Assembly (NCBI GenBank): GCA_016748015.1
Contig: JAAOMT010000672.1
Location: 443,094 to 507,093 of the forward strand
DNA from: Geosiphon pyriformis uo1
Taxonomy: Eukaryota; Fungi; Glomeromycota
Direction: 5' to 3'
Length of the DNA stretch: 64,000 nucleotides
Below the pieces are notes generated by a model. The model searched no databases. It saw nothing but the letters and a program-made list of their open reading frames with translations, and was not told the origin of the DNA. Both the position numbers and the translations under genes were made by a program. Positions 3,001 through 46,300 of the stretch are shown here, piece by piece; the stretch's first letter is position 1, and each line of letters begins with the position of its first letter.

Positions 3001-3492
3001 TAACATTTTTGTTTTAGAAAAATATTTATAGATTTTTATAATTGATTATTGATAACTCTATTGCTTTTTATAATAATTTTTTGATCAATGTTTTAAGCTT
3101 CTGTTAATAATAAAATTATGCCTCCATGTTTTTAAGTATGATTCTTTAAAAAATATGTTTTGCAAATGTTTTAGGAAATATTATGACTCATAATTCAGGA
3201 ACTAAATTAATGATACAATCATAAAAAAGGATCATTTAAATTTTATCAATGTAAATATATCTATAAAAAAAAAGCGAAAAATTGAATAGTGTGAATAAAA
3301 TATTCCATACAAAAGAAACATATAAGCCACTACAAAGATGTTGGTTTTAGGGAAAACAATAGCATCATTTTGTCTTTAACCGAATCACTAGCAAAATATG
3401 ACGATCTTGCTGCTAAAATTTGTAAAAATTCCAACATTAAAAATTCCAACATTTCAATAAGCTACTGAGATCGTGAGATAAGAAGTTAAAAT
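1..3492. repeat. Large fold-back inverted repeat (arms 1-1075/2418-3492 and 1096-1378/1549-1830; 20-N gap at 1076-1095; ~170 bp loop)
   Basis: Position i pairs with 3493-i across 1-1075 (ATTTTAACTTCTTATCTC at 1 vs GAGATAAGAAGTTAAAAT ending 3492). 1096 pairs with 1830. Arms look identical by eye except near the loop. Confidence 0.95.
1549..2853 (+). pseudogene. Multi-exon pseudogene or fragment, possible PD-(D/E)xK (REase-fold) protein; mirror copy on minus strand at ~640-1548
   Basis: GT..AG introns (donors ~1702, ~2400, ~2618) separate coding-like exons: FRQYISQFTKAASNRNQILTLVRKSF; KHKFDGILKV..IILFEFSKG; YLIRPLPSIYLLDEF..IPICFEDFETF. Stops and frameshifts present. Confidence 0.5.
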
Positions 3493-8531: not shown

Positions 8532-9350
8532 TTATTTTTCTAACCTGTATTTCATTTCCAATTCTGTGATCAATTCCCCAACCTCATGTTGAAATCGTTG
8601 TCGAAAATATACGATACGATCACGCGAAGCAATAATAACATTTGCCATCTTTTCTTTTTTAGCCTCTTCACAAGCTCTATTCCCGACATCAATCATAATA
8701 TCTGTTCGATTCAATTCACGCCTTAAAGTCCAAAGAAGTCTCCGGTTCTTGTCTTGAATCGCCATATATTCCGCTGCATCATCATCGATCCCAGGAAGCC
8801 AATATCTTCTCCCACTTGCAGAGTCAAATAGTCGAGGTATTCCCATATATGACATGGTTCGTAAAAGTTTTTCTGAATATGCCCATTTCACTTTTAATTC
8901 AGCCTCGCTATGTTTAAAATATTTCTTGAATTGTATCAGTATTATCAAAATTTCATGAAAGGTACAATTTCAATTGAAATTCGTTTACCTTATTGTTCTC
9001 TCGTTTATACAGGGTTCACAGGATCTAACTTGAAATTCCCAATAAACTTTAACATGTTGACGATTCTTTTCTTTGCAAAACTGACAGCCATTTTCCAGAT
9101 TTGCTAATTGTACATATGATCTTTCATTCATATTTGGAGGTGGTGGTAGTTGTAGGTCTGGCAACATGATCAAACGTGATGCACGCCATATAGCTTCACT
9201 CGATGAAGAGTCAAAAGTGCATAAAAAACCTCGAAACCGACGATTTACTTGTGAGAGACTGACCAGGTCTATTGGAGATAAATTTTTACATGTTTCAACG
9301 AACAATTCTGGCGGCATCGTTACGATGCTTGCTCGATTTTCATCTGCCAT
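8532..9350 (-). CDS. F-box protein with CxxC...CxxC zinc motif, 2 exons (9350-8989, 8907-8532)
   Basis: N-terminal MPPELFVETCKNLSPIDLVSLSQVNRRFR F-box pattern; CQFC...CEPC; 81-bp GT-AG intron 8988-8908 joins the two ORF-track ORFs in frame (TIS|EAELK). Confidence 0.88.
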
Positions 9351-10191
9351 GATTTTGTCTTGATAAAAATTATGAACTTTGATGTGATGATAGTTTTAAA
9401 AATATCTGATTTCAGCGAAAATTTTTAGCTTGGATGAATCCAATCAAAAAAAAATTAAAATCAATCAATCAATCACCAAAGGAATATGAAGGAAAAAAGT
9501 TCAAAAAAAAATTTTAAACAAAAAATTTTCAAAAAGAGAAAGGCTCAATATTTGTATCTCACACAATAATTAAAAACGAAATCTCTCAAACAGTCAGCCA
9601 CTTTCGGAATTCAGTCCAGACTCGAGAGGCTGTACAATTGTATCGTCATCTCCCATGCAACTGATCATACAAAGAAATTCGATATTGTTGCAGGGTCACA
9701 TTTTTGTCTCAGAGACTAAAGAATACAAATCAACACGCATTTTTTTTTTTCAATTGTTCCAATTTGGTGTTAATCGTCCGAAGAGCAAGATCATGAACAG
9801 AAACTTGACTGTAATACTTTTTATTGACCGTTATACTTTTTATTGACCGTTTATAATTGTGTGTGCTATAGCACATCAAACCACTTTTGATTCACTTGCC
9901 AACTCCTGATTTTACAGCATTTCGGCCATTACCTTTTCTTAATAAATTCCATTGAAATAAACTTTTGCTAAAGTTTTATGCATTCGTTTTTAATGTTTTT
10001 TAGCAAAAAAAAAATCAAAAGTCTTTCTCGACTTTTGTTCTTAAGTATGATCTCATTGAAATAATAATAAAGAAAATATTTTGATAAAAAATTATTATTT
10101 CCTATAAATTAAAGATGATGAGGGGGGTGTTGATGCATCCAAGTATATCTATGAAAAGGGTTCATTATGATTAATTTGCGCATTCAAAATG

Positions 10192-10576: not shown

Positions 10577-11972
10577 ACTTCAAAGTATTTATTACTGTAC
10601 ACATTTGAATAAAAATTTAAAAATGATTTTATCAAAAGTTTCCGCGCGTATCAAATGAAAAAAGTACACTAAAAACTTAATTATTCCATTCGTGCATAAG
10701 ATTGTCCAAAAATTTTATCCCAGCCTCTCATTTTATGCAACTTTCCGTGAAAGTAGTAGAGCCTAATGATTTAGCCAATCTGCAGTGTTCTACCCATACA
10801 GAATCTAGAAACTAGCATAAACTTACATTGCATTGAATTTCGCTCTTACTTTCAAAATGTTGCAATGTGAAAAAAAAAAAAAAAAAAATAGTTAAATTTG
10901 ACTGATGATTTCTTTTTGGCCTATAATGGCAATGGAATTCCTTATACCACAGTACTAAAGGGTACTTGTGTATTCTTAATCTTATGCAGGAGAGGTAAAT
11001 CGGGATAAATGAAATCGCCGTTTATATAATTATGATTTCATTTTCCCCGTTTTTTTTTTTTTTTTTAAGGATTTCTAAAATTTCAAAGTAAAATCGTAAT
11101 CTTTTTATATGCTGATAAAAGTTATTAGTTTGGAGCAATCTCTTTTTCTGAATCTCTAAAATGTTTTTACGTGATGTTTTTCATGAAGGATTTCATCTTG
11201 ACTCCTTTGAATTTATTTCTGACTTGAACTTTTTTTTTTAAAATCTACAAGTTATTAAATCTTTAAACCTAAGCTTTTCTTTATTCATCCTTACCAAATC
11301 CGCTTAAAATGTTATTGGTATCATTTATTCATCGTGTTTTGAGAGATTTAAAATAGATGTGATGAGCTTTTTGATTTAAGTAAGAACTGTGTATATAAAA
11401 AATTTGATTTATTATTTGTATACTTAATGCTTGAGCTCTCTATGTCAAATAAACTGTTTTATATATCGGGAGGTTCACCTTGGGCAGCTTTTAATAATTT
11501 ATTCTTATATTGAATGCTATAGGCAAAACTTTCAAAGTTCCCAGGTGGAAAGTATTAATATCTAAATCATGATAATTTATCTTAAATAAATAAAATGAAT
11601 TCAAAATTTTCAAGCATAGGTAAAAAGTAGAAAGTCTTTTAATTATCTACATATTTCTAATAAAAAAAAAACTGTTTTTTTTTTTTGATTTTGCAGACTT
11701 GCTAAAGTAGTCGCATTTAGATTTTTGTCACTTTCTCATCAAAAAGCCGATGATGCTAAAATGACGATATTGACCTTATTATTATTTTCATGATGGCATC
11801 AGGTGGCATCATACCATATGGTGGTGATCCTGAAATAATTTTAACTATCAATAAAGACGTCATAAATTGTTTATTGTTTATAAAGTCAAATTTTATAATA
11901 TTAATAAGCTTGGTGCAAGTATTAAATTAATTTTTACTCTAAAAAAAATCCAAAGTTCCTCTCATTAAAGAA

Positions 11973-12882
11973 ATGTTATCCAAAAGTAAGATTCGTCTTG
12001 ACACAATTCCGCTCAATTTATTCCAAGAAATTTGCAAATTCTTGTCAGGCGATGATCTTTTGGTTCTATCACAAGTGAACAAAGCATTTCAAAAAATTCT
12101 ATGTAACGAAGATGAATCACCATTGTTTGAGGCTATTTGGAAAGAAAATAGATTAAACTTTTTACCACATCTTAAACTACCGCCACCCCCCAATTTGAAT
12201 GAAAAAGTCTACGTGAATTTGGGACGATTAGATCGAGGTTGCCAATTTTGTCAAAAATCTGAAGGGGTAAAAATTCATTGGGAATTTCAAGTACGATGTT
12301 GCAAAACATGTTTTGCAATGTTGACTACTAAGTAAGCCAAATTTTGAGTAAATATTTACGATTCAGTTTTTTCGATTCACTAATATTCTAATCCTTAAAT
12401 CAATTTTTTATTGTGCTAATAGTTTCTTTGAACAGCAAAAAATATATGGCAAAGATTCACCTGAAGTCAAAGCGATACGAGAAATTTGTAAAATTCTTCC
12501 TCATCAATATAGCCCAAAATCAAATGATAAACGTTGGTGGATTCCTGACATCAATTCAGCTAAGTTTGAACTCGAGAAATTGAAAAGTAAAAATCAATTT
12601 GAACTCTGGAAATTACTTCGATTGCTGAACTCCTCAGATCGAATGATTGATGTCGCCTATCGCTCATTAGAAGCAGATGAGAGAAACTTTGACAATGAAA
12701 TAAATTTCGGAGAATCACTTTCGGGGAATAAATCGATTGATAAAAAGCAAGGTGCAGAAAATCAATCACTAAATGAACAAAAAGCCCAGAAAAATCGATC
12801 AATCGAATTGAAAATAATGCAAATACATCATTATAAAAGAATGAAGATTCATACTTTGAAGCGTATTCAAGATTTGTTTTAA
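11973..12882 (+). CDS. F-box protein with CxxC...CxxC motif, 2 exons (11973-12331, 12423-12882); paralog of 8532-9350
   Basis: IPLNLFQEICKFLSGDDLLVLSQVNKAF F-box; CQFC...CKTC; intron 12332-12422 (GTAAGC...GCTAATAG) splices in frame; KRWWIPDIN and SDRMIDVAYR match RRYWLPGID and TDIMIDVGNR of the paralog. Confidence 0.88.
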
Positions 12883-21447: not shown

Positions 21448-22904
21448 GGAATTGATTGGGATTAATTTTGAAAGTAATGAGTAATTGTATTTATCATGAA
21501 ACTGAATTATTAATCACCATCATGTCCTCCCACTTACGTTTCTGTATCTCAAATAAGCCCAATCAGTGTAACAATCCAAAATGGGTGATCAGAATTGTTA
21601 TATATCGTTGTTTCTCTTTATAGTACCGCATATAACCAAAAATAAGAAACCTTATTTTCGAAAAAAAATTCTTATTCTATTATTTGAGATGCAATTTAAC
21701 GAATTAAAAATTAATAATCAAACATAGATATAGTAAAATTAAAAAAATAAAGATATTATTTTTAATAATAAATAATAAATAATAATAATAATAAATAGGT
21801 TTTTAAAAAAAATTAAAGGTTTCATATTTTTCAAACTTAATATTATTTTATAATTTTTTTCTAAACTAAAAGTTTCTTATACCTATTTTCTGTCATAAAC
21901 GATATATGACAAAAGTCAAACTATTTTCTACACTATAAAGAGAAATCCAAAAAAAAGATATCTCATCTTATAGTGAATTTATTATTATATTATATAATAT
22001 ACATTATATGTATATTTAGTAAAATTATCAATCAGTTAATATTATTTGATTCTATTTAGCTTTAAAGTTGATATTTACATTAACTTACCGTAAATATCTC
22101 ATTACGGGTGGCTGGTCATTTGTAGACAAAGCGTGATTCACGTTTACTTTTTTCAATTCTTCCAAAACATCTATTTGTTATTATTGATAGTTCTAATTCT
22201 TTAGAATTTTCGGATTTTTGAATTCTTTACTAGTCACTAATTTAAAATTTTTATTTGTTACAATTAAAGAATTTAAATTTTTTGATAATTATTTAATAAA
22301 GTTATATAAGTTTATTTTAATTTATTATTATTAGCAAGAGTAAAATTTACAGTGTATAATTATTGTTATTAGTTAAGATTTAAAAAAAAAGAAGTATCCT
22401 CGCACAATGCCAACAAATTTGAATTGTAATTCAGATTACAAATTTCTAAGCAATAACGGAGAATACAATTTCACTTGAAAGTCAAAAAATTAAACACAAG
22501 ATCTTTAGATTTTAAAAGCTTTATAAACTTTAATTGATGGCTTATAATGTCCATGCTGAGACCTCTTTCCATTATATTAACTTTTTATTGCAAATATGAT
22601 AATTTCCATTTTTATAACATATACTAACAAACTTACTTATGATAATTTTTTATTTTTTTAATTAAACAATATACATGAAAAATTACCAATATGTTAATAA
22701 CTTTTTAGTCAACCAACTATTTCAAAATTGGAGTATTATAAATTGTTTTTCTTACTTGCAAAATTGTGTACTGTTTTTTTAATAGTAAAAATAATATACT
22801 TGCATAAAAATTTTATAATATTATCAAGTCTGCTGTCATATATGCTAAAGCAAGAATAAAATTGTTAAATTATACAAAAATGCCAAAAACTTATTTCAAA
22901 AAAT

Positions 22905-23347
22905 TGTAAGGCAGTAATTAGTTATAACTATTTATACAGCATATGTTTATTATATAGCTAACCTTAACTTTATTGTTTTATAAAAGAAAAATGATTAAAA
23001 AATATATAAAAGTGTAAAATATTGATTATAAATTTAAACCAAAGTCAACCAATTAATTCAAATAAGTTAGAGTCAATATATTATTAATATATAAAATAAA
23101 TCTCAAGCAAATTTTAATTATTATTAAAGCCAAGAAAAGAATATTAAATGAAAAAGAAATATGGACTTTTATTATTTTGTGATAAAACAAAAAATTCTAA
23201 AAAGTATTTAAAACTAACAGATTAAAATAAGCTGATTAGTAAAAAGGTATTATTTTGGCTTTGAAATTGTTTAACTGTTAATTTCTGGTAAAAAATACTA
23301 TATTTAGTTAATATTGTATTTTTAAAAAGAAAATTTGGTGTCTTACA
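22905..23347. mobile_element. Possible degenerate solo LTR
   Basis: Begins TGTAAGGCA and ends TGTCTTACA (9-bp inverted termini, one transition), 443 bp, very AT-rich. No clean TSD. Confidence 0.35.
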
Positions 23348-23599
23348 ATAAATATAAGAAAAATTTTAAATCAAACAATATAGTTTCAAAAAAGGGAAAA
23401 CCAATATTGAATTGGATTTGAATATAAGAAAATGTTTTTTAAAATTTTAAAATTTTTTGTTTATATAGTAATTTTTCCTTAATTGCTAAAATGGAAGGGA
23501 TAAAAAATGCTTGTTGACCAAGTTGAAAAGAAGTAAGCTTTCTTCTGAAAATTTTAAGCTGCTTAATAACTTTTACTATCTAAAAAAGAAGTCATGCCA

Positions 23600-24055
23600 G
23601 TCATAATTTCTCACAGTATTAAAAAATTTGCCAACTTAAAGAATTGGATCTTTAGTAGCATGCTTTCTGCTGTCAAACAACTATTCTCAAGCTCATTGAG
23701 TGCCTTTTGAGAAATTCTAATGTCAAGCTTGTTAGAGCGAGCATATTCTCTTTTTGAAATTCTGTTTACCAGCTGCTCGAGATATCTTGAGTTGTTATTT
23801 GTACCAAGAATATAAGCCTGTATCACAGGAAGTTATTTCTGTTAATAAACCTTACGATTTCTGCTCTTGTTATTTGTAGTCAAGAACTAAGCAGAACCAG
23901 TAAAAAGAAGTGGTCAAAAACCACAATACTTCCAGTTTTTGGAAGTAAAAAGTTCCTGGAAAATATTGTGTTTGGGCTGTGTAGAAAAGGGTTATTTAAG
24001 TCAATTCTCAATGAGTAAGCAGAGAACTTGGTGAAAGTAGATGGAAAGAAGATAA
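23600..24055 (+). pseudogene. Frameshifted Cys-rich hypothetical protein resembling a repetitive MRE family
   Basis: Pieces across frames: CQAC*SEHILFLKFC; PYDFCSCYL/CSQELSRTSKK; VVKNHNTSSFW; EVKSSWKILCLGCVEKGYLSQFSMSKQRTW. Family resemblance is from recall, not a search. Confidence 0.5.
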
Positions 24056-24253
24056 TGTTTATGCAAGCAACAAATAATTTTTTTATTAAAAATAACTATT
24101 TCCCTATAAAAGACTAATAAAAAAAGCAGTAGCATTTATATTCTGCTTAAGATCCAGAAAAAACTATCCTTGCTCTTTGGAGGAAGGTGTTCAAATAGGG
24201 ATAAATCTATCCTCTTAAACAAAAATAAAATAATAATAATTACTTTTCTCTTA

Positions 24254-24615
24254 AAATCAATATTTCATAACCATTTTTGCAATTTCAACTCTTTCTTGCG
24301 GCGTCTTCATATATCTTTAATATCCTCAAGCTCGCTAATACCTTTACAAATCTTTTTAGTTGCTTTGGCTATCATTGGAGCGCCTGAATTTAGAGTGCCA
24401 GCAGATAAACCATCAACGGCAACACCAACAGTAAATTCTTGAAACCACTTTCCGACTTTTTTAACATCATCATCAGTAGCATGGCCAATAATTTCTGTTG
24501 TCGCACTAGCAGCAACTCCAACAACTGTCAATGAACCAGTTATAGCAACTGCTGGAGTAAAATTACTAGCCGTTAAAACCGCAGAACCAATTTTTTGGAG
24601 AAATTCTCCACGCAT
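24254..24615 (-). pseudogene. Small Gly/Ala/Thr-rich hydrophobic-helix protein, bacterial (MRE-like); probable frameshift near the C-terminus
   Basis: ORF 24615-24307 (MRGEFLQKIGSAVLTASNFTPAVAITGSLTVVGVAASA...); a shifted frame continues YMKTPQERVEIAKMVMKY*; no introns. Confidence 0.55.
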
Positions 24616-24823
24616 ATCGTCTCAAAAACTCATTTTTCTAAAAAAAAGCTTTTTTTTTAATAAAAAGGTATATTTATAAGAGTTATTTTTTGACCAAGCA
24701 GTCAGAGATATAAACACACCACAAATATTTTTTCATATATCAAACTCGTACCCTTTTTAACAATACTCTTTAATCAGTCTCATTAGTTTTCTATCAACAT
24801 TCAGTAGCTGCTAGTAATCTAGC

Positions 24824-25030
24824 AAACAAGAAAGTGATAAATCTAGCTTATATGACTATGAAGAAATCAGCACCAACAAAGGCTCGCAGCATACAATTAG
24901 GTCTTTGTCTAAACCTGAGTTTTATAAAACCCTAAAAAAAATCAGCCTGGCAGGAGGAGTGTTTTTGGACGATATTTTATAAATAAGCTTGACTGAGTAT
25001 CAGAAGAAGCGAAGTAAAAAAGAGAAAATG
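24824..25030 (+). pseudogene. Ribbon-helix-helix-like small DNA-binding protein remnant
   Basis: HTIRSLSKPEFYKTLKKISLAGGVFLDDIL*ISLTEYQKKRSKK: beta-alpha-alpha pattern with one internal TAA; next frame starts MSKQPT at 25028. Confidence 0.4.
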
Positions 25031-25257
25031 AGTAAACAACCAACTGACTCCCAAGTCAACCCAACAATCAGTTAGGGTTAACAAGCGACCACTTCCAGAA
25101 GACACACCCGGCCACCATTTCAGAGCAATAAAAGACGGAGAAACGATGATTAAAAATCTTGAGCATCCTTAGGAAGGAACACGTGAACTAGGCTATATTC
25201 AAAACCTTTTCAATTACTGATATTTAGGAAGACCTTTATGCTGTTTTGCTGGGATAT

Positions 25258-25575
25258 TCAGCAATCATAATTTGTTAAAGTCAAGGTAAGATGTAAAGCC
25301 TGCTCAATTTTCTTCATTATTTTTATATCCAATTCCCTTATCAATTGTGCATATCTGGTCGAAAAGAATAAATCTTATTTAATTGACTAGTTAAAGATAA
25401 GATAGTAATCAAAGGACTGAATTTGTTTTGTTCGTCATTAAAGATTACCAGCCCCGGATGTGTGCCTTGCAATTCACGAATATATTTTCTTTCTGATTTA
25501 TCAACAAAAAGGTAAATTTACTCAATAGACTTCTCGTTGACTATTATTATTTAACTCTTGGTTTCTTTGCAGCAT
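25258..25575 (-). pseudogene. mazF: PemK/MazF-family toxin (mRNA interferase) pseudogene
   Basis: MLQRNQELNNNSQREVY(TGA)VNLPF / VDKSERKYIRELQGTHPGLVIFNDEQNKFSPLITILSLTSQLNKIYSF / DQICTIDK / ELDIKIMKKIEQALHLTL. These are the collinear PemK hallmarks (RGEVYWV, RPxLVxSNDxxN, xxPLTS, DQIRTIDK, MxxIExAL); three frame breaks. Confidence 0.88.
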
Positions 25576-25790
25576 TTTTATTATTTCGTAAGTCAACAGT
25601 CCTCAATTTCGGCTCTTTCTCACAACTTTGCTTCCTCTAATAAATTGGGGTTGTTAGTATATCTCCTAGACAACTTGCTTCTTCTAATTTCTCCTTCAAT
25701 AATTCATTAATAAACCTACTAATTTTCCCTTTACCAACTTTGTTTAATAACTTCTGATATAAATAAATTGGCAAATGTCCTTATTAGTTC
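25547..25790 (-). pseudogene. Cognate antitoxin (RHH/MazE-like) pseudogene, upstream of and overlapping the toxin
   Basis: HLPIYLYQKLLNKVGKGKISRFINELLKEKLEE / RRYTNNPNLLEEAKL(TGA)ERAEIED / KNAAKKPRVK*. The stop (25547-25549) lies downstream of the toxin ATG (25575), as in type II TA operons. Confidence 0.7.
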
Positions 25791-26568
25791 TAAAAGTAAT
25801 TGTTAAGTCACATATGTATATTTTAGAAGGCATATTTGTTTTTACAAAACAGCATTTCTTTAAAAAAGAACTGTTTGTTTTTCCACATTTTTTGATATTT
25901 TAACACTTTTTGAAACCAAGCTTATTATTCTTGAAATTATTAATTGAGCAAATTATCCTTAAATTCATAAATTTGCATCATTTGCTTGGTCAAAATTGTT
26001 CTTTTTCTTTTAAAATTAGCAATATGCTAATTTAATTTTTTTGTGATATACTGTTTAAAGCGGAACTTGATAAGTGCCATTCAATTAAATCTTAACATTG
26101 AATAATATTTTTGTTAAGGGATCGCTATCTTTTGGGAAAACTGAATAATCTTTGAGTCGAGATTTTAAATAGCATAATCAAAATTATAAAAATACAGCGG
26201 TGTTTTTTAAATAAATATTTTATACAAAAACAAAATGTCCTTTAAGAAATAAATTTGATGTACAATTTTTATAGAATTCTTGAAGATTCAAGTGTTTACG
26301 GGGAGACTAAATATATGGAAACTTATTTTAGCCAAAAATAGTAATTTTATTGAAATTTTAAAACTTAAATTCTTTACCTGATGAAGACGTGAATTGCATT
26401 TGAATCCGTTTTGATCGATTCTCTATGCGTTCAAACCATTTGTTAGGAACAGATGTTGTGAGGCAAATTCTCTAGTTCTTTCATTACATAAAGTTACTTA
26501 CGCGATTTTTTTGACTTTGCTGACTTGCTTTTCTTTTTCGACGCTAAATACCAATTAAATCCTTGAGG

Positions 26569-29500
26569 TCAAAATATAGGAGAAAGCAAGGTGAAATCAT
26601 CATTCGCAGGCTTACCTCTAGAATTCTCGCTTGAAATCACCCTAGGGTCTACCTGAACTGATATTAATCGGCTAACAAATACCGCTTCAGCATGTTGGAT
26701 ATTTAATCCACCATTTTCCTTGCGATCTAAATTTCCAATACGTGTTTTTTCGGCCATTTCAAACTGTTTCTGAATTTCCTCATTTCCATTTTCCAACCAC
26801 CCGGTAAACGTATGTATTAAATCTCGGGCTGTTGGCCGAATCTCGGTAGGAACCCCCCAACATGTTCGTATAAGATTAGCAAAAATCGGGGGCACTTCGT
26901 CAGGAATTTCTGGTCTTAAACCTTCACAAATCTTCTTTACGAGATCAGTCTCATGAGGTACATCACCAAAAGGTAATCTGCCCGTGGCTATCTCATACAT
27001 GATGCTGCCAAAACTGTATATATCAGATGCTTTAGAGTACTGATCACCTCCTAACACTTCTGGAGGTATATATGGAAGTACACCATAAATCTGATGTTTC
27101 TTTTTTACTTCCACAAAGCGCGACAATCCAAGATCACAAATTTTTAGTGATCCAGTTTCCCATAAAATGTTACCACAGTGTAAATCTTGATGTACCATCC
27201 CCGACTCGTGTATCGTCCAAAGAATCCATGTAAGATCTAAAAGCATCTCAACTTTGGCAGTCCATGTAAATTCTGAAAATCTTTTTTGAACGTAATCCCG
27301 TAGATTACATTCAATGAGTTCCATCACAAGGATAAAATCAGACGTGACCGGATCTCGAGTAATTCCAAACCACGTTGGCATATCTGATGTTACTACGTCC
27401 CATTGGCTTTTTAGCTATGCAAAAATTTTCACAGAATTAAGATTTTGAAAATAATCTCAGACACACACCGAAAAATTCTGACAATTACCTCATAAAGAAA
27501 AGACGCGTCCATTCTTTGAGAATTATGTAGGCGTTTAAGGCCGACAGAATGATCGCCATATCTAGTCCAGGTCATCATTTGATCATTCCATACACGAATA
27601 CGACCACCTTTCCAAGTTGCTTTATCTACTGTGCTGTAACCTCCTTTACCAATCAGCTTAAATTCTTCAAATTGATTAAAAGGAATCCATTCAACTATTT
27701 TAATAGAACTTTCAGCCTCAAGTTGAACTTCCCTAATAAAATTGTCAATAGATTCAATCCCACTACTCCATTTCGGAAATTCTTCGGTGAAATGACTAGA
27801 ATTGCAACTTTTGCACCAATCGACACCAGTATTGGCACGACCACACTTTTTACAAGTCCCAAGGTGTGTCAGATCAAAGGTCCAAGAATCTTCACTATGA
27901 GATGTTCGTTTGCTAAGAGGTATACTACGAGTTGTACGTGATTCTTTACCCGTGGATATAATGGAAGTAGTTTGACTTTGGTTACGTGAATGAATTCGTT
28001 TTAAACCAACTTGATCTTTGGAAATGTAATTTTCGAAATTAGGAGATAAAGGTCGTTCATTGCCAGCACTATATCGTCTGAATTTTGAATTCTTCACCAG
28101 CGATAACTCACTTCGACGCCTTTTATTAAAGCTGCTTTCAGATAACGGAAGTTCCTTGTTTTGCGAAATTTTCCCTATTTCAGGCTCAGGGGTTTGCTGT
28201 TTCGTAAAATATTCCTCTGAAGAGACATATTGTTCAAGTGCCACCGTTAACTGTTGTTCCATTCGATCATTGAACGAATTATTCTCGATATTTTCTTCTC
28301 TTAAAGTTGCCAGAGTTTCACGTTTTGTGGTTCGTATTCTTTCTAAAGTTGGACCTTCATCGCTGCCACGTCTACTTGTACGATAAACACTGGGAGGTGG
28401 AGTTTTAATCAAGGAAGTTTCATTCGCTAAACTTTTCTCAAATTCAGAAAGACCAAATTGAATAAAATCGTTCTCGTCATCAACGACAGGAATTGGCCAA
28501 GGTCCATCAGAAATCTCCACCATTTCATTTAATTGATCTAAGTCTTTTATGAACCCATTTTTTAAATTTGAATTCAATAAATCATTGGCAAATTTTTCAT
28601 CGGCTTTCTCCAGAAGAGCAATTTCTTCAGGGGAAAATCTAAACTGTTGATTTGCCTGTGGACTTGAATCAACTGTAAGACGATGATGAAAATGGGTATC
28701 GTCATTGATAAATTCGGGTGAATTTGATGTAATGATCGACTGACGTGAAGAAGATTTATTATTATTCAGTATGCTTGATTTGGCTGAATTTCCCAGGTAT
28801 TCACTCTCGTACGAGCCGACTGGGCTATTCTCGATGCTCCGACTTTCTTTTCTTGCTATTCTTTTATGTGCACCAATTTGAGAATCTGGTCGATTTTTCT
28901 CTTTCTTTAGATGAGCCTTTACTCCAATCTTTGTAGATTTTTGAACTTCGACTACGACATTATCATTATCTCTTCCTTTTGGTTTTGTGGAGACCTGTTT
29001 TTCTTGTTTGACGTTGTTAAAATTTTCCCTGAGAAAGTTTTTTTTCACCAGTTCCCCAAGACCTTGCCCTTTTGGTATTAAAAATTCTTTAAATTTTGGA
29101 AATTGGATTTCATTTTGAGGAGATGGCAAATTTTTTTCCAATACGGTTCCCGTATCATCAGCCAAAGTTTGTTCACGAGTTTTTTTGCTGGAAAGCTGCT
29201 GACTATCCAATGAGCTGTATTCAAATTGTTGAGCTTTATTCCCAATATTAACGCTTTGTTCGTCATTATTGAAATTCGTAGTTATTGATATTTGGTCCGA
29301 ATTTTCTAAATCATTATTTTGTCCTAGTTGGTCACCATTTTCCATGAATTTTATTTCCTGATTATCCCCGAAATTTCCAGGATCTTGTTCTTCTTTTAGA
29401 CCGTTAGGAACTATATCAAATTCTAAAAATTTTGATTTTTCATGCTTTCCATCGTGAGCCACAATTTTTTGGACTTTTCCTGTTACAGGAAACTTTTCTT

Positions 29501-40387: not shown

Positions 40388-43300
40388 AGCAATTAAACTT
40401 TAATAAAAAACTTTTTTCTTTCATCAATCCCCTAATCACAATAAAAACTAAGAAGTTGTTAAAAGAAATACAATTTTTTTTTTCCTTTTTTTCCTAGTTT
40501 TTTATAGTTATTTCCTTTAACATGACCCCTTTTGTTACTATGGATCCAGTGGGCTTTTTTGCTAGTGGTTCTGGTTCTGCTTTGGCTGGGTTGAGAATCT
40601 AATTCAGCACTAAAAAAAAGCATGCATAGAGAGTGTCTACTCTTGCAGTCCCTTGTACAAAAAATCTAAAAAATCTGATGTTATTAGTAGTGTGGTGAAC
40701 TTGTCAGCTGGACCTATACCTATCAGCATATTATAAACTATCTGTAGTAAATGCAAAGTGTTTTAAAATAGTGAAGTGGAAAGTAAAAAAGCTAGTGTTA
40801 GTGAAATATCCAATGTTGAAAATATAAACAACATGATAGCCAAGAAAACAAGTTACATAGATTCAAATGCTTCTGAAACTGATGATATAGTGGATGACAC
40901 AACTCCGAAAAAAACATGTACAAGAATATTTGTTTTAGATAAGCTGCAAAAATGCTCTCTTTCAAGAATTTGAATGACAATAATGCTGAATTGGTGCTGC
41001 TTGTGCCTAAGTTTTTTGAGTCTCAATTTTTTCTATTGGCTAAATCATAGAATAAGAAAGTTAAGAATTTTAATTCTGCTAAATTATTCACTTTGAATAT
41101 AGAGCTGTTGACAATATTTGAAAAAACTAATAGTAATAAATTAATTGCAATAAAAAAAATTTTCTATCAAATTAATGGTTTTGAAGGAGCTTCCACTCCC
41201 TCAAAATTTTCAAAAATTATTAAATTATTATTTACATCTGAAATAAATTTGAAAAAAACTAGAGAAATGGCAATTAGTGAAAAGATTTTGGTCAATAATA
41301 ATCTTAGGAAAGTAAATAGCTAATCAGATTAGAAAGTGATCATTAAAGAGATCCCAGTTGATCTTCTCAAATCTACTGTGGAATTTGTTTTTTTCTAAGT
41401 TTAGCAAGATTGTATCAATCAAGTTGTAATTAATTGGTTTATGACAAAAGGCTTTGATGAAATATGAATCATCTAAGATAGCTGATTTAGTCACAGCTAA
41501 ATAGTCTGTTTTTATGGGAAAAGATTCTGTTTATATGGCAAAGGTTATTGGTAATAAATAAACATAGGCATCCAGGAATCAGCATCAGGTTTTGTTGTAT
41601 ATGTTTTCAATTAGTACTACTGTTTATGACTTATCTGAATTATTAGTTTTTTATAATAAAAAAACTTGTATTATTGGCCATAATCCGAATTTATATGTGC
41701 ATAATAGGTGTATTGTGATGTGTTTTAAAGATAAAACATCCAAATTGGCTGCTATTGGCTCTATTCCTGTGTTTAAAAATATGAATTTACACTGAACTGG
41801 TCTTTCATTGGCTTGTTGTGCTTGTTATAAATAATTTGGTTATATATCTGTTAATTGTGCAATAGGTGAGAATTCTGGTGGTTATGGTAAGTGAGTGGTA
41901 ACTTTTTAGGATCATGTCTGCTTGGCCAATATTTATAAAAAGAAGCAGACACTTATTGATTGTTCAGTTTTTTTTGGTGGCAAGACTTGAGTCCAGATTG
42001 CTAGTGGTTTTTCCTTTTGTATAATCTTTTCAAATTTTTTTAGTACTGGTTTGTTTTTGGGAAACCCATTTCAATGGTTTTCAATTCTCTTAGTAATTCC
42101 TATCTGGTTGATTGTTTGGCTTCTTTAGAGCACTCTTTGGAGCTTTTGGTGGATCAAGTTTCTGTTATTATAAAAAAACTGAGCTTTGTGGAATTGGTGC
42201 CTTTGGCATCCAAGTCCCATGTATCTTTTTTGGTTATTTCAGCATCTTTAGCTTCTAATTTAAATTCGGATATGATTTTGGATGACATATTAGTGTCTCC
42301 TGCCTTTTTTTTCAATTGTTGTGAATACAGTTGCTGATTTTAGCTCAAATAGCTCTAAGGTTTTGACTACCAAAATAGGTAAGTTAGAATCTAAAATGGT
42401 GGCTTTGGAGGTGTCAGTTGAATCAGTTTTGGAAAGATTGGATTGTTTGTGCTCTGGTTTGAGTTTGTTAGCTCTTTTTATTCCTCAATAAGTAATATTA
42501 TATGAAAAATTGCTACATGTAATGTTTGTGGTATTAATGTTTCTGCCAAGCAGAAGAACACTATCCATTGACATAAAGATTCTGGAAATTTGGTTTCAAT
42601 AATTATGGAGACAAAGTTGAGATTTGACAGTAGACTATAGGATAAAAATAAATTTAATAATGTTAGAGTTTTTTTATCTGGATTAGACAAAAGATTTCTT
42701 GGTGCTGGGGTGGCAATCATTATAGATGTTTCTCTAACTTATTATATATGTAAGATTTCTAAAGTGTCTGAATGGCTTCTCTCTGTCAGGTTGCTTTTCA
42801 AGAATAAATTTTCTGTTTTGATTCTGGGGCTTTATGCTAGTGCCTTCTTGGCTGCTCATTTTTTTCAGACTAGTAATATTAATTTTTTAATAGCTAAGAC
42901 TGTAAATGAGTCTTTTTTTGTTGTATTAGGTGGGAGTTTTAATGAAAATGGTTTCTACAGATATGTAAGTTTCAAAAAATACTTCAATTTAGAACTGGTC
43001 AATTCTTTGTAAAGAAGTCCAATTGCAAAGAATTCTATGTGAAAAAATTCAAGAGATGTAGAAAAGACAATTGATTACATATTTATTTCTTTAAATTTGG
43101 TTAATGCAGTAGTGAATCATAATGTTGTGGATGTCAGTAAACATTTTGACACCAATTACCAAACAGTTTCTATGTCTGTGAATTTGGATGGGCTTTTGGA
43201 TGCGCAATTAAACTCTATTCACAGACAGACTAATAGGAACTGGTGGAAATTTGATTTTAAGGATGCTGATAATACAAAGTGAAACAATTTTAAAAATGCC

Positions 43301-46300
43301 ACAGCAGTTAATACAACAATGTTCTTTAATGAATTTACAGTCTTTATAAAGTTTTCAGATTTGAGTGCAATGTGAGATGTTGTTTACAAGATTATAACTT
43401 TTTTGGCTAATGAAATATTTAAAAAGAAATAGTTTAAGGGCTATGATGATGTTTTCACTAAGGATTCTTCTAAGTTTCATAAACTGGAGCTTTTGGTTTC
43501 AAAGATTGTCAAGGCTTCTCGTGAAGAGAGTCCTGACAGATTTATATTCTTTATGAAATACTAGAATTTTTTGAACAGCAGCAGAGCTTTGGTTATTTAG
43601 GATCTTATGGACTCTGATGTAAATTTTGATCATGTACATTCAGTTCTTTTTAGTGTGAGGAAATTTTATTGTGTATCTAAGCTTGCTGAATTTTTGAGAG
43701 CTAAAAAATTAAGAATTAGGTCAGTTATTAATAAAAAAATAGAAAATTTTGTGATTGATAAGAATTATATAATCAAGAGTGTGTTGAAACGTTCTTTTTG
43801 AAAAATAGTTTTGGACTATTTAGTCATTGAGAATGAACTAATTTTGGAACCCAAACTGGTTAAAGTTAAGGTGAATTTGATCATGGAAGGCTGAACTAAA
43901 AAGCACAAAATGGAGGCTAATTTTTTTGATAAGTGGTTTTATTAATATCAGTCTTTGGAGTACATTTTTAATGATGCTTTCTAGAATGTAATAGGTCTGG
44001 TTGGCTTTGATGAGTTATTTAGTGTGGTTTCTAATTTGTCTGATGATAAGACTGCTGGTTTTTCTGGAATTTCAAATGAGCTTTAGAAACATTGTGACAG
44101 GACAATTTTGGATATGCTTTTGGTGCTTTTGAATTCTTGTTTGTCTTGTGAATTGGTGTTTTATACTTAAAAGAAAACTTGGGTCTTAATAATCTCTAAG
44201 TTGTATGAGTGAAAAAACATTCTCACTAATATTTAGCCAATTGTTTTAATTGAGACATTCCATAAAATTCTTTCCAAAATTTTCTCAGACAGAATTTTAT
44301 TGGCATGTAACACTTTTAATATTTTGTGTGAGGACAATTTTTCAGTTTTAAAGAGTACAATAATGCAGCCTCCTATTTTTACTGTTGGTTTGGTCATTGA
44401 AGATGCTCTAAAAAAGAATTATGAACTCTGGTTGGTCTTACAAGACATGTGAAAAGCCTATGACTCTATTGGGTAGAAACATTTTAGAAAAAGCTTAGTT
44501 AGGATGAAAATATATGGCAAGTTTATTAGATTTTTTGGTGGCATTTACAATGATCATGTCAATAAGGTTATAACAGATTTTGGGCTAACAAATAGATATT
44601 GGATGCATGATGGTTTAAACCAGGAAGAAGTGTTCTCACTGTTTCTTTGGCACATATTTTATAATTTACTTCTGTGTGAGGTCAAGAGACAAAAAAGTAT
44701 ATGTGGATACAGGCTAAATTTTTATTATATTGCCAGAATAGATTGTCTAAAATCTCAAGCTAGATTAATGTTTTTTTTGCTGCTGGTGCTTTTGTCAATG
44801 ACACAATCTGAATTGATAGCAGCCAAACTGTGAGCTAATACATTCTCAATGTTACTAGTGAATTTTTTTGAATTAATGACATTTCTATCAATAATAACAA
44901 GACAATAGTCATTCTTATTAATTGCAGAGTTAATTGCCCCAATTTGTCTATCAGTGATTTACCTATTTTTATTGCTAAAAAGGGCAAATCCCATTGTTAC
45001 TTGAGTATTTTTTATTAACTGAGAGTTTGTCAAAGCCTAGTTTGGCTAAGATGTATTCTAATGTCTGTTTTTTTTGCCAATCTTGTTCTGAAAAAGACTG
45101 TTTCTGATAAGCAATTTTTGTATTTGGTGTTAGCAGTTTTTTATCTCATTGTTAACTACAGAATGCAATTCAGCTTTGTTTCCATTAGTGTATACAATAA
45201 ATGGGATGCTTTAATCTATAAAAGATTAAAGTTAAAATCTGGTCTGCCTTTCAATTTTCCCAATGCTGCACTCTGTTATCCTTTGTTGTATGGTTTGAAA
45301 ACTTTTAAGCAAATTCAGGCTGAAAACAAAGTAGCTTCTGTAGTGTGTTTTACAAACTCTGTTGGAATTTTAAGTCATTTGTTTTTATACTGGTCTTATA
45401 ACTTGCAAGTTCTGTTTTGGAGCCCACTATACTCTTTGGTCTCTTCTGCTTATATCAAGATTAGTGCTTCTAATAATTTTTTGACAAGTGTGGTTCATAT
45501 TTTTCTTAGGTGTAGGTTGTCTTTGAATGGTCATATGAACAGTTTTTTCTATCTTTGTGATAGAACTTCTATATTATTAGTTCTTGACAGATCTGAATTT
45601 TTTAAGTTTTTTCCATCCTTTCAGTGCTATGATATTGCTTTCATAAAGCAGCTTTATTATAAGAATAGTTCTGTTTTCGACTAGAAAACATTTAAGCATT
45701 AAAAAAAAATAGATTTACATGGCTCTGTTCCTGACTGGTTTGGGTATTTTATTAACTTCTTTAATGATGTAGTTTCTTCTTTTACTCATTTAGCTTCTTT
45801 GGGTGTTTCTGATTCTTCAAATGTTTTAGAGACTGGTAAATTTAAGCTTGTATGGGATCATTTGCTGAATATTATGACTGATAGTCTTTCTGTCTATACT
45901 AATAGATCTCTGAAAAACTTGGGAAGTGTAGATGTTAGGGCTGGTGCAGCAATCTATTTTAAGAATATTAATCTGGGTTTAGAGGTCAGGGTTTTAAGTC
46001 TTATGTCTTTTATATTAGCAGAACTGCAAGCTGTTGCATTGGCTCTCAAGTGTGTTTCTTTTTTTTAGCTTAGTTTGCCTTTTTACTAACAGTTAGATTG
46101 CTTTGGATGTGTGTAAATTGGATTTAAGTTTAATGCATCTGAATTTTTGGAATTAATTTTGAGTTAAGCATTAGCACATAGTAAACATTGTTCAAAAAAA
46201 GAATTTAAACAATAATTGGCACAAAGTAAATAAGCATTTGGGTGTCTTAGGTAATGTGCATACTGATATGCTTACTAATACAGCTTTTCTTTCTTCTTAG

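Follow-up and report, generated by a model that had tools for sequence, protein, structure and literature searches.

A decayed code-4 toxin–antitoxin cassette, probably captured from a Mollicutes-related endobacterium, in a nuclear chromosome of the fungus Geosiphon pyriformis

How does a block of bacterial-type genes, written in a genetic code foreign to the nucleus, come to lie between ordinary genes of a fungal chromosome? The question is raised by a 64-kb window (the whole stretch of DNA that was analysed) of the Geosiphon pyriformis contig JAAOMT010000672.1 (assembly GCA_016748015.1; 631 kb). A foreign block of ~2.3 kb at ~23500–25800 of this window, here called the island, lies between ordinary fungal genes ~466 kb into the contig. 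It holds the remains of a MazF toxin, its antitoxin, a Cys-rich protein and a hydrophobic protein, all of them homologous to genes on metagenome contigs that use genetic code 4 (TGA = Trp). In our judgement the island is most likely a dead, plasmid-like bacterial insert that was captured directly by the fungal nuclear chromosome, probably from a Mollicutes-related endobacterium (MRE).

A broken bacterial cassette between fungal genes

The window is AT-rich eukaryotic DNA with 26% GC, and the island stands out from it at 32%, compared with 14–21% in the left flank and 23–27% in the right flank. GC content steps up from 0.14–0.21 (23000–23499) to 0.28–0.42 from ~23500, and steps down to 0.23 from ~25700–25800, the right edge. 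These steps match the limits of homology to the foreign cassettes. At the DNA and protein levels, cassette homology is confined to 23599–25777 of the whole window: nhmmer matched 23599–24097, 24244–24631 and 25355–25777, and searching the window with every open reading frame (ORF) of the contigs that carry relatives of the island genes (below, donor contigs or donors) gave matches only at 23640–25777. The four genes matched the code-4 metagenome cassettes with E values of 1e-9 to 1e-37, the best matches being neither fungal nor transposon proteins, and an Rfam search of the island gave no match. Reading TGA as Trp yields longer frames on both strands of the island.

A preliminary description of this DNA, made from the letters alone, had placed a bacterial-type island at 23480–25900; composition and homology agree with it and set the block at ~23.5–25.8 kb. 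Of the five bacterial-style frames that it listed, four are homologues of code-4 metagenome genes. The fifth, an ORF at 24818–24979 (plus strand) thought to be of the ribbon-helix-helix (RHH) type, was rejected, having no Pfam match and only a non-significant likeness to the antitoxin family (E 0.26; hidden Markov model (HMM) independent E value (iE) 2.1). The description had also called every frame broken, which is true of the Cys-rich, MazF and antitoxin genes but not of the hydrophobic one, truncated yet internally intact. Its picture of a decaying insert agrees with our tally across the island of at least seven frameshifts and seven stops, in addition to truncations.

Table 1. Coordinates of the island genes, the neighbouring fungal gene and the conserved RNA element of donor contigs (window positions unless a contig is named)
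Feature	Position	Strand	Basis or remark
Cys-rich cassette protein, pseudogene	23594–24049	+	tblastn and nhmmer with L007
Gly/Ala-rich hydrophobic cassette protein, fragment	24260–24651	-	64% identity to L029
GC-rich (0.25–0.42) middle segment of island	24660–25269		composition marks it as insert
MazF/PemK toxin, pseudogene	25270–25533	-	L013 MazF alignment, PF02452, family HMM
Cognate antitoxin, pseudogene, directly upstream of MazF	25602–25810	-	alignment, family HMM
Fungal protein-kinase gene, 3' part (neighbour)	26274–27376	-	spliced contig, Pkinase match
Kinase introns, GT..AG ends	26307–26377, 26423–26501, 26544–26615	-	skipped in 892-nt contig
Conserved RNA element (candidate), copies in L013	8341–8719, 4844–5210	+, +
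Conserved RNA element (candidate), copy in L031	3675–4032	-
Conserved RNA element (candidate), copy in L004	865–1175	+
Conserved RNA element (candidate), copy in L032	95–437	-

The toxin gene is nearly full length (reference residues 10–114) and is spread over four frame segments, implying at least three frameshifts. Against the MazF of contig L013, residues 10–17 align at 25510–25533, residues 22–63 at 25359–25478, residues 74–84 at 25337–25369 and residues 91–114 at 25270–25341. A 58-residue fragment (25344–25517) matched Pfam PF02452 (PemK) with an E value of 2.6e-4 and 21.6 bits (gathering score 23.1), the intact donor MazF scoring 99 bits on the same family. The MazF family HMM (120 relatives) matched 25359–25481 with an iE of 3.1e-10, with weaker pieces in register. 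Among solved structures, the closest relative of the donor MazF is Bacillus subtilis EndoA (E 2.5e-14).

The antitoxin remnant abuts the MazF remnant upstream on the same strand, an arrangement shared by donors L013, L017 and L031. Reference residues 15–45 align at 25685–25777 and residues 62–78, in a different frame, at 25602–25652 (antitoxin HMM, iE 2.9e-11); residues ~6–14 are recognizable by eye in a third frame at ~25780–25810. The damage comprises at least two frameshifts, and toxin and antitoxin each contain one in-frame TGA, a stop in the nuclear code. The MazF–antitoxin module is a pseudogene pair, in which no intact frame was found. Donor antitoxins had no Pfam match, and the antitoxin piece in the window reached an E value of only 0.11 with Pfam RHH_6. 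In an AlphaFold2 (AF2) monomer model of the antitoxin (pLDDT 71) the N-terminus is extended and residues 18–28 and 33–61 form helices; the model's best Foldseek match is the RHH protein NikR, a weak one (E 6.8). Profile and model suggest, weakly, an antitoxin of the RHH type.

In the Cys-rich pseudogene, reference residues 10–154 of ~157 are recognizable over three frames. With positions 3130–3600 of L007 as the query, tblastn gave pieces at 23623–23694 (frame 2), 23697–23942 (frame 1) and 23936–24049 (frame 3), with a combined E value of 8e-22, and nhmmer aligned 23620–24049 to L007 at 6.8e-26. This gene has suffered two frameshifts and seven in-frame TAA or TAG stops. The hydrophobic fragment aligns without interruption, over 24310–24597, to residues 82–178 of the L029 protein (E 2.7e-37). 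It belongs to an intact ORF at 24307–24615 (minus strand; 102 codons, ATG start, no TGA), the only uninterrupted frame of the island. Some 80 N-terminal codons, corresponding to a conserved N-terminal domain, are missing, and a remnant of the C-terminus (the last ~15 residues) lies in another frame at 24260–24304. A search of 5.8 billion proteins with this ORF found only three relatives, each of which is encoded on a short JGI metagenome contig. When all island pieces were compared with Pfam, NCBIfam and PHROGs, a usable match came from the MazF piece alone; neither the Cys-rich nor the hydrophobic protein belongs to a described family there, and the models of both were poor (AF2 pLDDT 50 for the former; Atlas pLDDT 0.43 for the latter).

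Four in-frame TGA codons, one in each gene, align with Trp in the homologues. In the Cys-rich gene the codon (23697–23699) aligns with a donor Trp that is itself encoded by TGA; in the hydrophobic gene (24622–24624) its counterpart is the Trp in FWDD, a motif of the donors; in MazF (25522–25524) it is the conserved Trp of the N-terminal strand; and in the antitoxin (25620–25622) it likewise aligns with Trp. The source DNA therefore used genetic code 4, and lineages in which TGA encodes Gly are excluded as the source. The Mollicutes-type code proposed in the preliminary description was in this way borne out at Trp positions in all four genes.

Faint, non-significant likenesses were noted on the plus strand of the middle segment, to the antitoxin family at 24914–25009 (E 0.26; HMM iE 2.1) and to the 'THPA' motif of MazF at 25087–25149. 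They could be the last traces of another toxin–antitoxin module, in convergent orientation. We do not claim such a module, because the antitoxin-like stretch, its sole trace, is non-significant.

The island's exact protein sequence is on record on the one contig named above and on no other. One public DNA run, from the probable source sample, contains the whole of 22000–27500, and the independent assembly of this run includes an 8,374-nt Logan contig that covers this stretch with no differences and uniform depth and that holds both junctions, as expected for an integrated rather than a chimeric sequence. Apparent skips of 22667–24217 and 24667–26028 were considered as empty-site alleles and dropped, as they rest on 21-nt AT-rich anchors only. 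To the right of the island, an 892-nt contig (X2) from a second study's run, probably RNA, covers part of a kinase gene and skips 71, 79 and 72 nt, so that the intron-containing nature ascribed to this flanking gene is supported by splicing in an RNA-like contig (Table 1). The kinase matches Pkinase and PK_Tyr_Ser-Thr with E values of 1e-29 to 1e-31, and its nearest Atlas clusters are Mucoromycota kinases. On the other side, the neighbour next to the island is a putative gene at 20.4–21.6 kb, and further to the left lie fragments with P450 and GCR1_C domains.

Relatives of the cassette in environmental metagenomes

A search with the TGA-free, full-length hydrophobic relative from contig L004 returned 54 clusters, all metagenomic, on contigs of at most 10.4 kb and none from a sequenced organism. 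Clustering at 90% identity divides the MazF lineage into more than 240 clusters. Every one of them lies on short contigs from the environment, and the handful of 'NCBI' records included are metagenome assemblies. Known relatives of the island genes thus all lie on unassigned metagenome contigs. We fetched 30 relative loci and compared their gene content. A recurrent set was found, consisting of the antitoxin–MazF pair, the hydrophobic protein with a small two-helix membrane protein, and the Cys-rich protein of ~157 residues. Some loci carry extra modules, namely HigBA, a helix-turn-helix (HTH) protein and a 284-residue protein of unknown function; a reading of the last as a primase-polymerase-type replication protein found no support in family searches and was dropped.

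The donor contigs have 29–36% GC, and their long intact ORFs need TGA to be read as Trp. Full-length donor hydrophobic proteins have 200–260 residues, many copies reading through TGA, at which JGI and ENA gene calls often cut them. Cassettes are co-located and repeated, gene starts and stops overlap, and the layout is compact, intron-free and bacterial. The 10.4-kb contig L013 is a longer, non-identical array of such cassettes. Shine–Dalgarno sequences are mostly absent before the donor genes, a feature that is uninformative for Mollicutes. The donor contigs contained no tRNA in a tRNA scan, no mitochondrial gene, no Rfam match and no transposase.

Some donors may be circular. An identical stretch of 139 nt stands at both ends of L031 (NCBI metagenome GCA_009772095.1; 5,948 nt), L030 from a different sample (JGI 3300012201) is 99.9% identical to L031 and circularly permuted, and L017 (ENA ERZ27252182) has a 141-nt terminal overlap. 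These overlaps and the permutation imply, for at least some donors, circular molecules of ~5.8 and ~7.1 kb or else tandem arrays whose assembly yields circles. All three carry HigBA, MazEF and small Cys-rich peptides, and no recognizable replication gene was found in them. The suggestion in the preliminary description that the island is foreign and mobile-element-like gains from this comparison, since the MazEF pair and two cassette partners recur together on code-4 contigs, some of which assemble as 5.8–7.1-kb circles.

A conserved non-coding element of ~300–340 nt lies directly 5' of every antitoxin–MazF module on the code-4 contigs and is absent from the window (Table 1). RNAalifold predicted 29 base pairs from nine copies, with compensatory double changes at 15 of the pairs. 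In the predicted structure a long-range helix encloses a variable insert, and the end is formed by a conserved GC hairpin with a T-run terminator that points away from the toxin–antitoxin operon. The element had no Rfam match, and comparison with the middle segment of the island gave no convincing alignment. On this structural prediction the element is a candidate new structured RNA, perhaps with a role in replication control or antisense regulation.

The hydrophobic family has an architecture of its own. An alignment (A2) of 20 metagenome proteins (for example, L004:1494–2153) shows a conserved N-terminal domain (~85 residues) whose end is marked by YGPG, next a Gly/Ala-rich region that varies, and last a C-terminus of either of two alternative types, one with a His/Cys zinc-ribbon-like motif. 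The hydrophobic gene is followed by that of the two-helix membrane protein, a layout that recalls polymorphic toxin and immunity pairs. The pre-toxin domain PT-TG occurs in an Atlas neighbour at 0.88, which we take as a lead only.

Origin and route of entry

We propose that the DNA came from one cassette of a small, AT-rich code-4 element family, in which the MazF endoribonuclease toxin and its antitoxin would have formed an addiction module that stabilized the element. The donor would have been an MRE resident in the cytoplasm of the fungus, or else a plasmid carried by such an MRE. By analogy with nuclear mitochondrial DNA segments (NUMTs) and Wolbachia insertions, released DNA may have been joined into a nuclear double-strand break in what is a 5-kb intergenic region. 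Decay in the nucleus would then have been neutral, because the nucleus reads TGA as stop, has no use for the genes and finds no eukaryotic signals in them; frameshifts, stops and truncations would have built up with the donor-like GC content kept. We infer from this that the island is non-functional.

An MRE is the likely donor when direct insertion and arrival on a transposon are counted together. The attribution rests on code 4, on base composition, on the reported presence of MRE in the host fungus and on the lack of any other plausible code-4 donor. MRE assemblies have 29–33% GC and are rich in repeats, pseudogenes and phage content (PMC11423566), MRE carry abundant mobile elements (PMC4916391), and Geosiphon, according to a review, hosts an MRE population of ~721 kb (PMC13315312).

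Several observations weigh against direct capture from an MRE. The hydrophobic family was absent from 185,579 GTDB genomes, one per bacterial or archaeal species, in two scans, and an IMG/VR scan and tblastn against PLSDB found nothing for it. The MazF relatives in PLSDB are all distant, with 40% identity at most, and Mollicutes are not among their sources. As no sequenced genome, phage or plasmid was matched, the link to MRE is circumstantial; the blank in the genome scans is itself weak evidence either way, since MRE genomes are poorly represented. About 600 bp of the island are unaccounted for: the middle segment gave no significant match to donor ORFs or donor DNA (nhmmer, tblastn with donor ORFs of at least 30 residues, family HMMs) and none in Pfam. 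We found no target-site or junction signature of an insertion route. The contig that spans the junctions is from the same sample as the assembly and is independent of it in method only, being a contig and not raw long reads. Accordingly, of the earlier proposal that the island is a piece of an MRE mobile element, the bacterial, cassette-type and code-4 parts stand, and the donor genome is unmatched in GTDB, PLSDB and IMG/VR.

The cassette could instead have arrived as the cargo of a nuclear cut-and-paste transposon using code 4. We consider this unlikely. The best inverted-repeat pair around the island (23426–23450 and 26350–26374) is 25 nt long, 76% complementary, AT-only and at chance level; the rest of the 64-kb window has no transposase-like or other code-4 ORF of 110 codons or more; the sample's contigs hold no second copy at 90% identity or above; and the donor contigs, as noted, lack transposases. 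With neither terminal inverted repeats, target duplication, transposase nor second copy, direct capture is favoured.

Code 4 is the code of fungal mitochondria as well. The source could therefore be mitochondrial DNA or a mitochondrial plasmid of a fungus, making the island NUMT-like, and the donors are indeed small, AT-rich and possibly circular, with no bacterial genome matched in the GTDB scans. Their content speaks for bacteria: it is plasmid-like, with MazEF, HigBA and HTH regulators, overlapping gene starts and stops, a MazF closest to EndoA of the Bacillota, and a conserved structured RNA with a hairpin and T-run terminator of the Rho-independent type. Mitochondrial genes and tRNAs are missing from the donor contigs and, to our knowledge, toxin–antitoxin modules are not known in mitochondria. 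A mitochondrial donor is accordingly somewhat less credible still than transposon cargo.

A different objection concerns function. The fungus might have retained and used the ORF at 24307–24615, given that ~7 indels per 985 bp in the neighbouring genes predict ~2 frameshifts in its 309 bp, with a probability of ~0.1 of finding none. The ORF is, on the other side, a truncated middle piece without the conserved N-terminal domain, stop mutations seldom arise in its Gly/Ala/Val-rich codons, no fungal homologues were found, and no RNA contig lies over it in the single RNA-like run (a comparison in which contigs cannot prove silence). We think domestication very improbable, and the 102-codon frame has probably stayed intact by luck.

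An assembly artefact, in which a contig of a live endobacterium was mis-joined to fungal sequence, has next to no likelihood: MRE contigs are known contaminants of Glomeromycotina assemblies (PMC11423566; PMC10507103), but the island genes are heavily broken, unlike live donor copies, the independent 8,374-nt contig holds both junctions, and the island lies deep within a 631-kb contig.

Beyond direct capture of this one insert, a broader proposal is conceivable, and we put it forward tentatively, as possible rather than probable. The donors may be undescribed, circular or tandem code-4 replicons of MRE, ~5.8–7.1 kb in size and made up of toxin–antitoxin cassettes, each placed after a conserved structured RNA. 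Such replicons could be a recurrent source of nuclear DNA, the island being one of several independent dead insertions, with traffic between fungus and MRE running both ways.

Elsewhere in the window, we noted two paralogous, intronless-looking genes that face away from each other, 8988–9395 (minus strand) with 8535–8984 (minus strand), and 11943–12332 (plus strand) with 12352–12879 (plus strand). They have similar N-termini with a motif that resembles an F-box by eye. A run of TGA-free ORFs on the plus strand at ~42.6–46.1 kb (42641–43009, 43013–43429, 44477–44905, 45019–45681 and 45703–46065) looks like a degraded non-LTR retrotransposon.

Comparison with known systems

With the MazEF systems of the Bacillota (B. 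subtilis EndoA/EndoAI, YdcE/YdcD) the module shares a toxin of the MazF/PemK fold whose gene comes right after that of a small antitoxin, in the same orientation. It differs from them in being a pseudogene in the window, in the code 4 of the donor lineage and in a donor antitoxin with no Pfam match. Toxin–antitoxin-rich cassette arrays of plasmids and chromosomal integrons are likewise strings of short cassettes, each with its own toxin–antitoxin pair, but the donors lack a recognized integrase, attC-like sites and a replication gene, and carry a conserved structured RNA of ~300 nt before each module. The comparison exposes, in environmental metagenomes, a widespread code-4 toxin–antitoxin cassette family with a conserved structured RNA and no cultured or sequenced host.

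As far as the passages on gene transfer in published fungus–MRE work go, the direction described is from fungus to MRE (Naito 2015 and Torres-Cortes 2015, as cited in PMC5982333; Longley 2023, PMC10507103), and the passages on fungal assemblies handle MRE-like sequence as contamination (PMC11423566; PMC10507103). The island concerns the same partnership, but the DNA is physically part of the chromosome and would have moved from bacterium to nucleus; an earlier description of such a case may exist. A decayed, integrated code-4 insert shows that DNA moves into the nucleus too. Some of the MRE-like sequence discarded as 'contaminant' may therefore be nuclear, and contamination screens need a junction test. 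Such fossils could serve to follow earlier endobacterial lineages and to put dates on them.

Host nuclei that contain endosymbiont DNA are familiar from other systems, and we regard the island as a further case of this phenomenon. Like Wolbachia transfers to arthropods and nematodes, NUMTs and nuclear plastid DNA segments (NUPTs), it is a fragment of what would be a cytoplasmic genome, lying between host genes and decaying, with the composition and coding signature of the donor kept. It differs from them in its host, a glomeromycotan-type fungus, in its putative donor, an MRE or its plasmid-like element whose genome is unmatched, and in the donor's different code, because of which the host could never read the insert, even when it was new.

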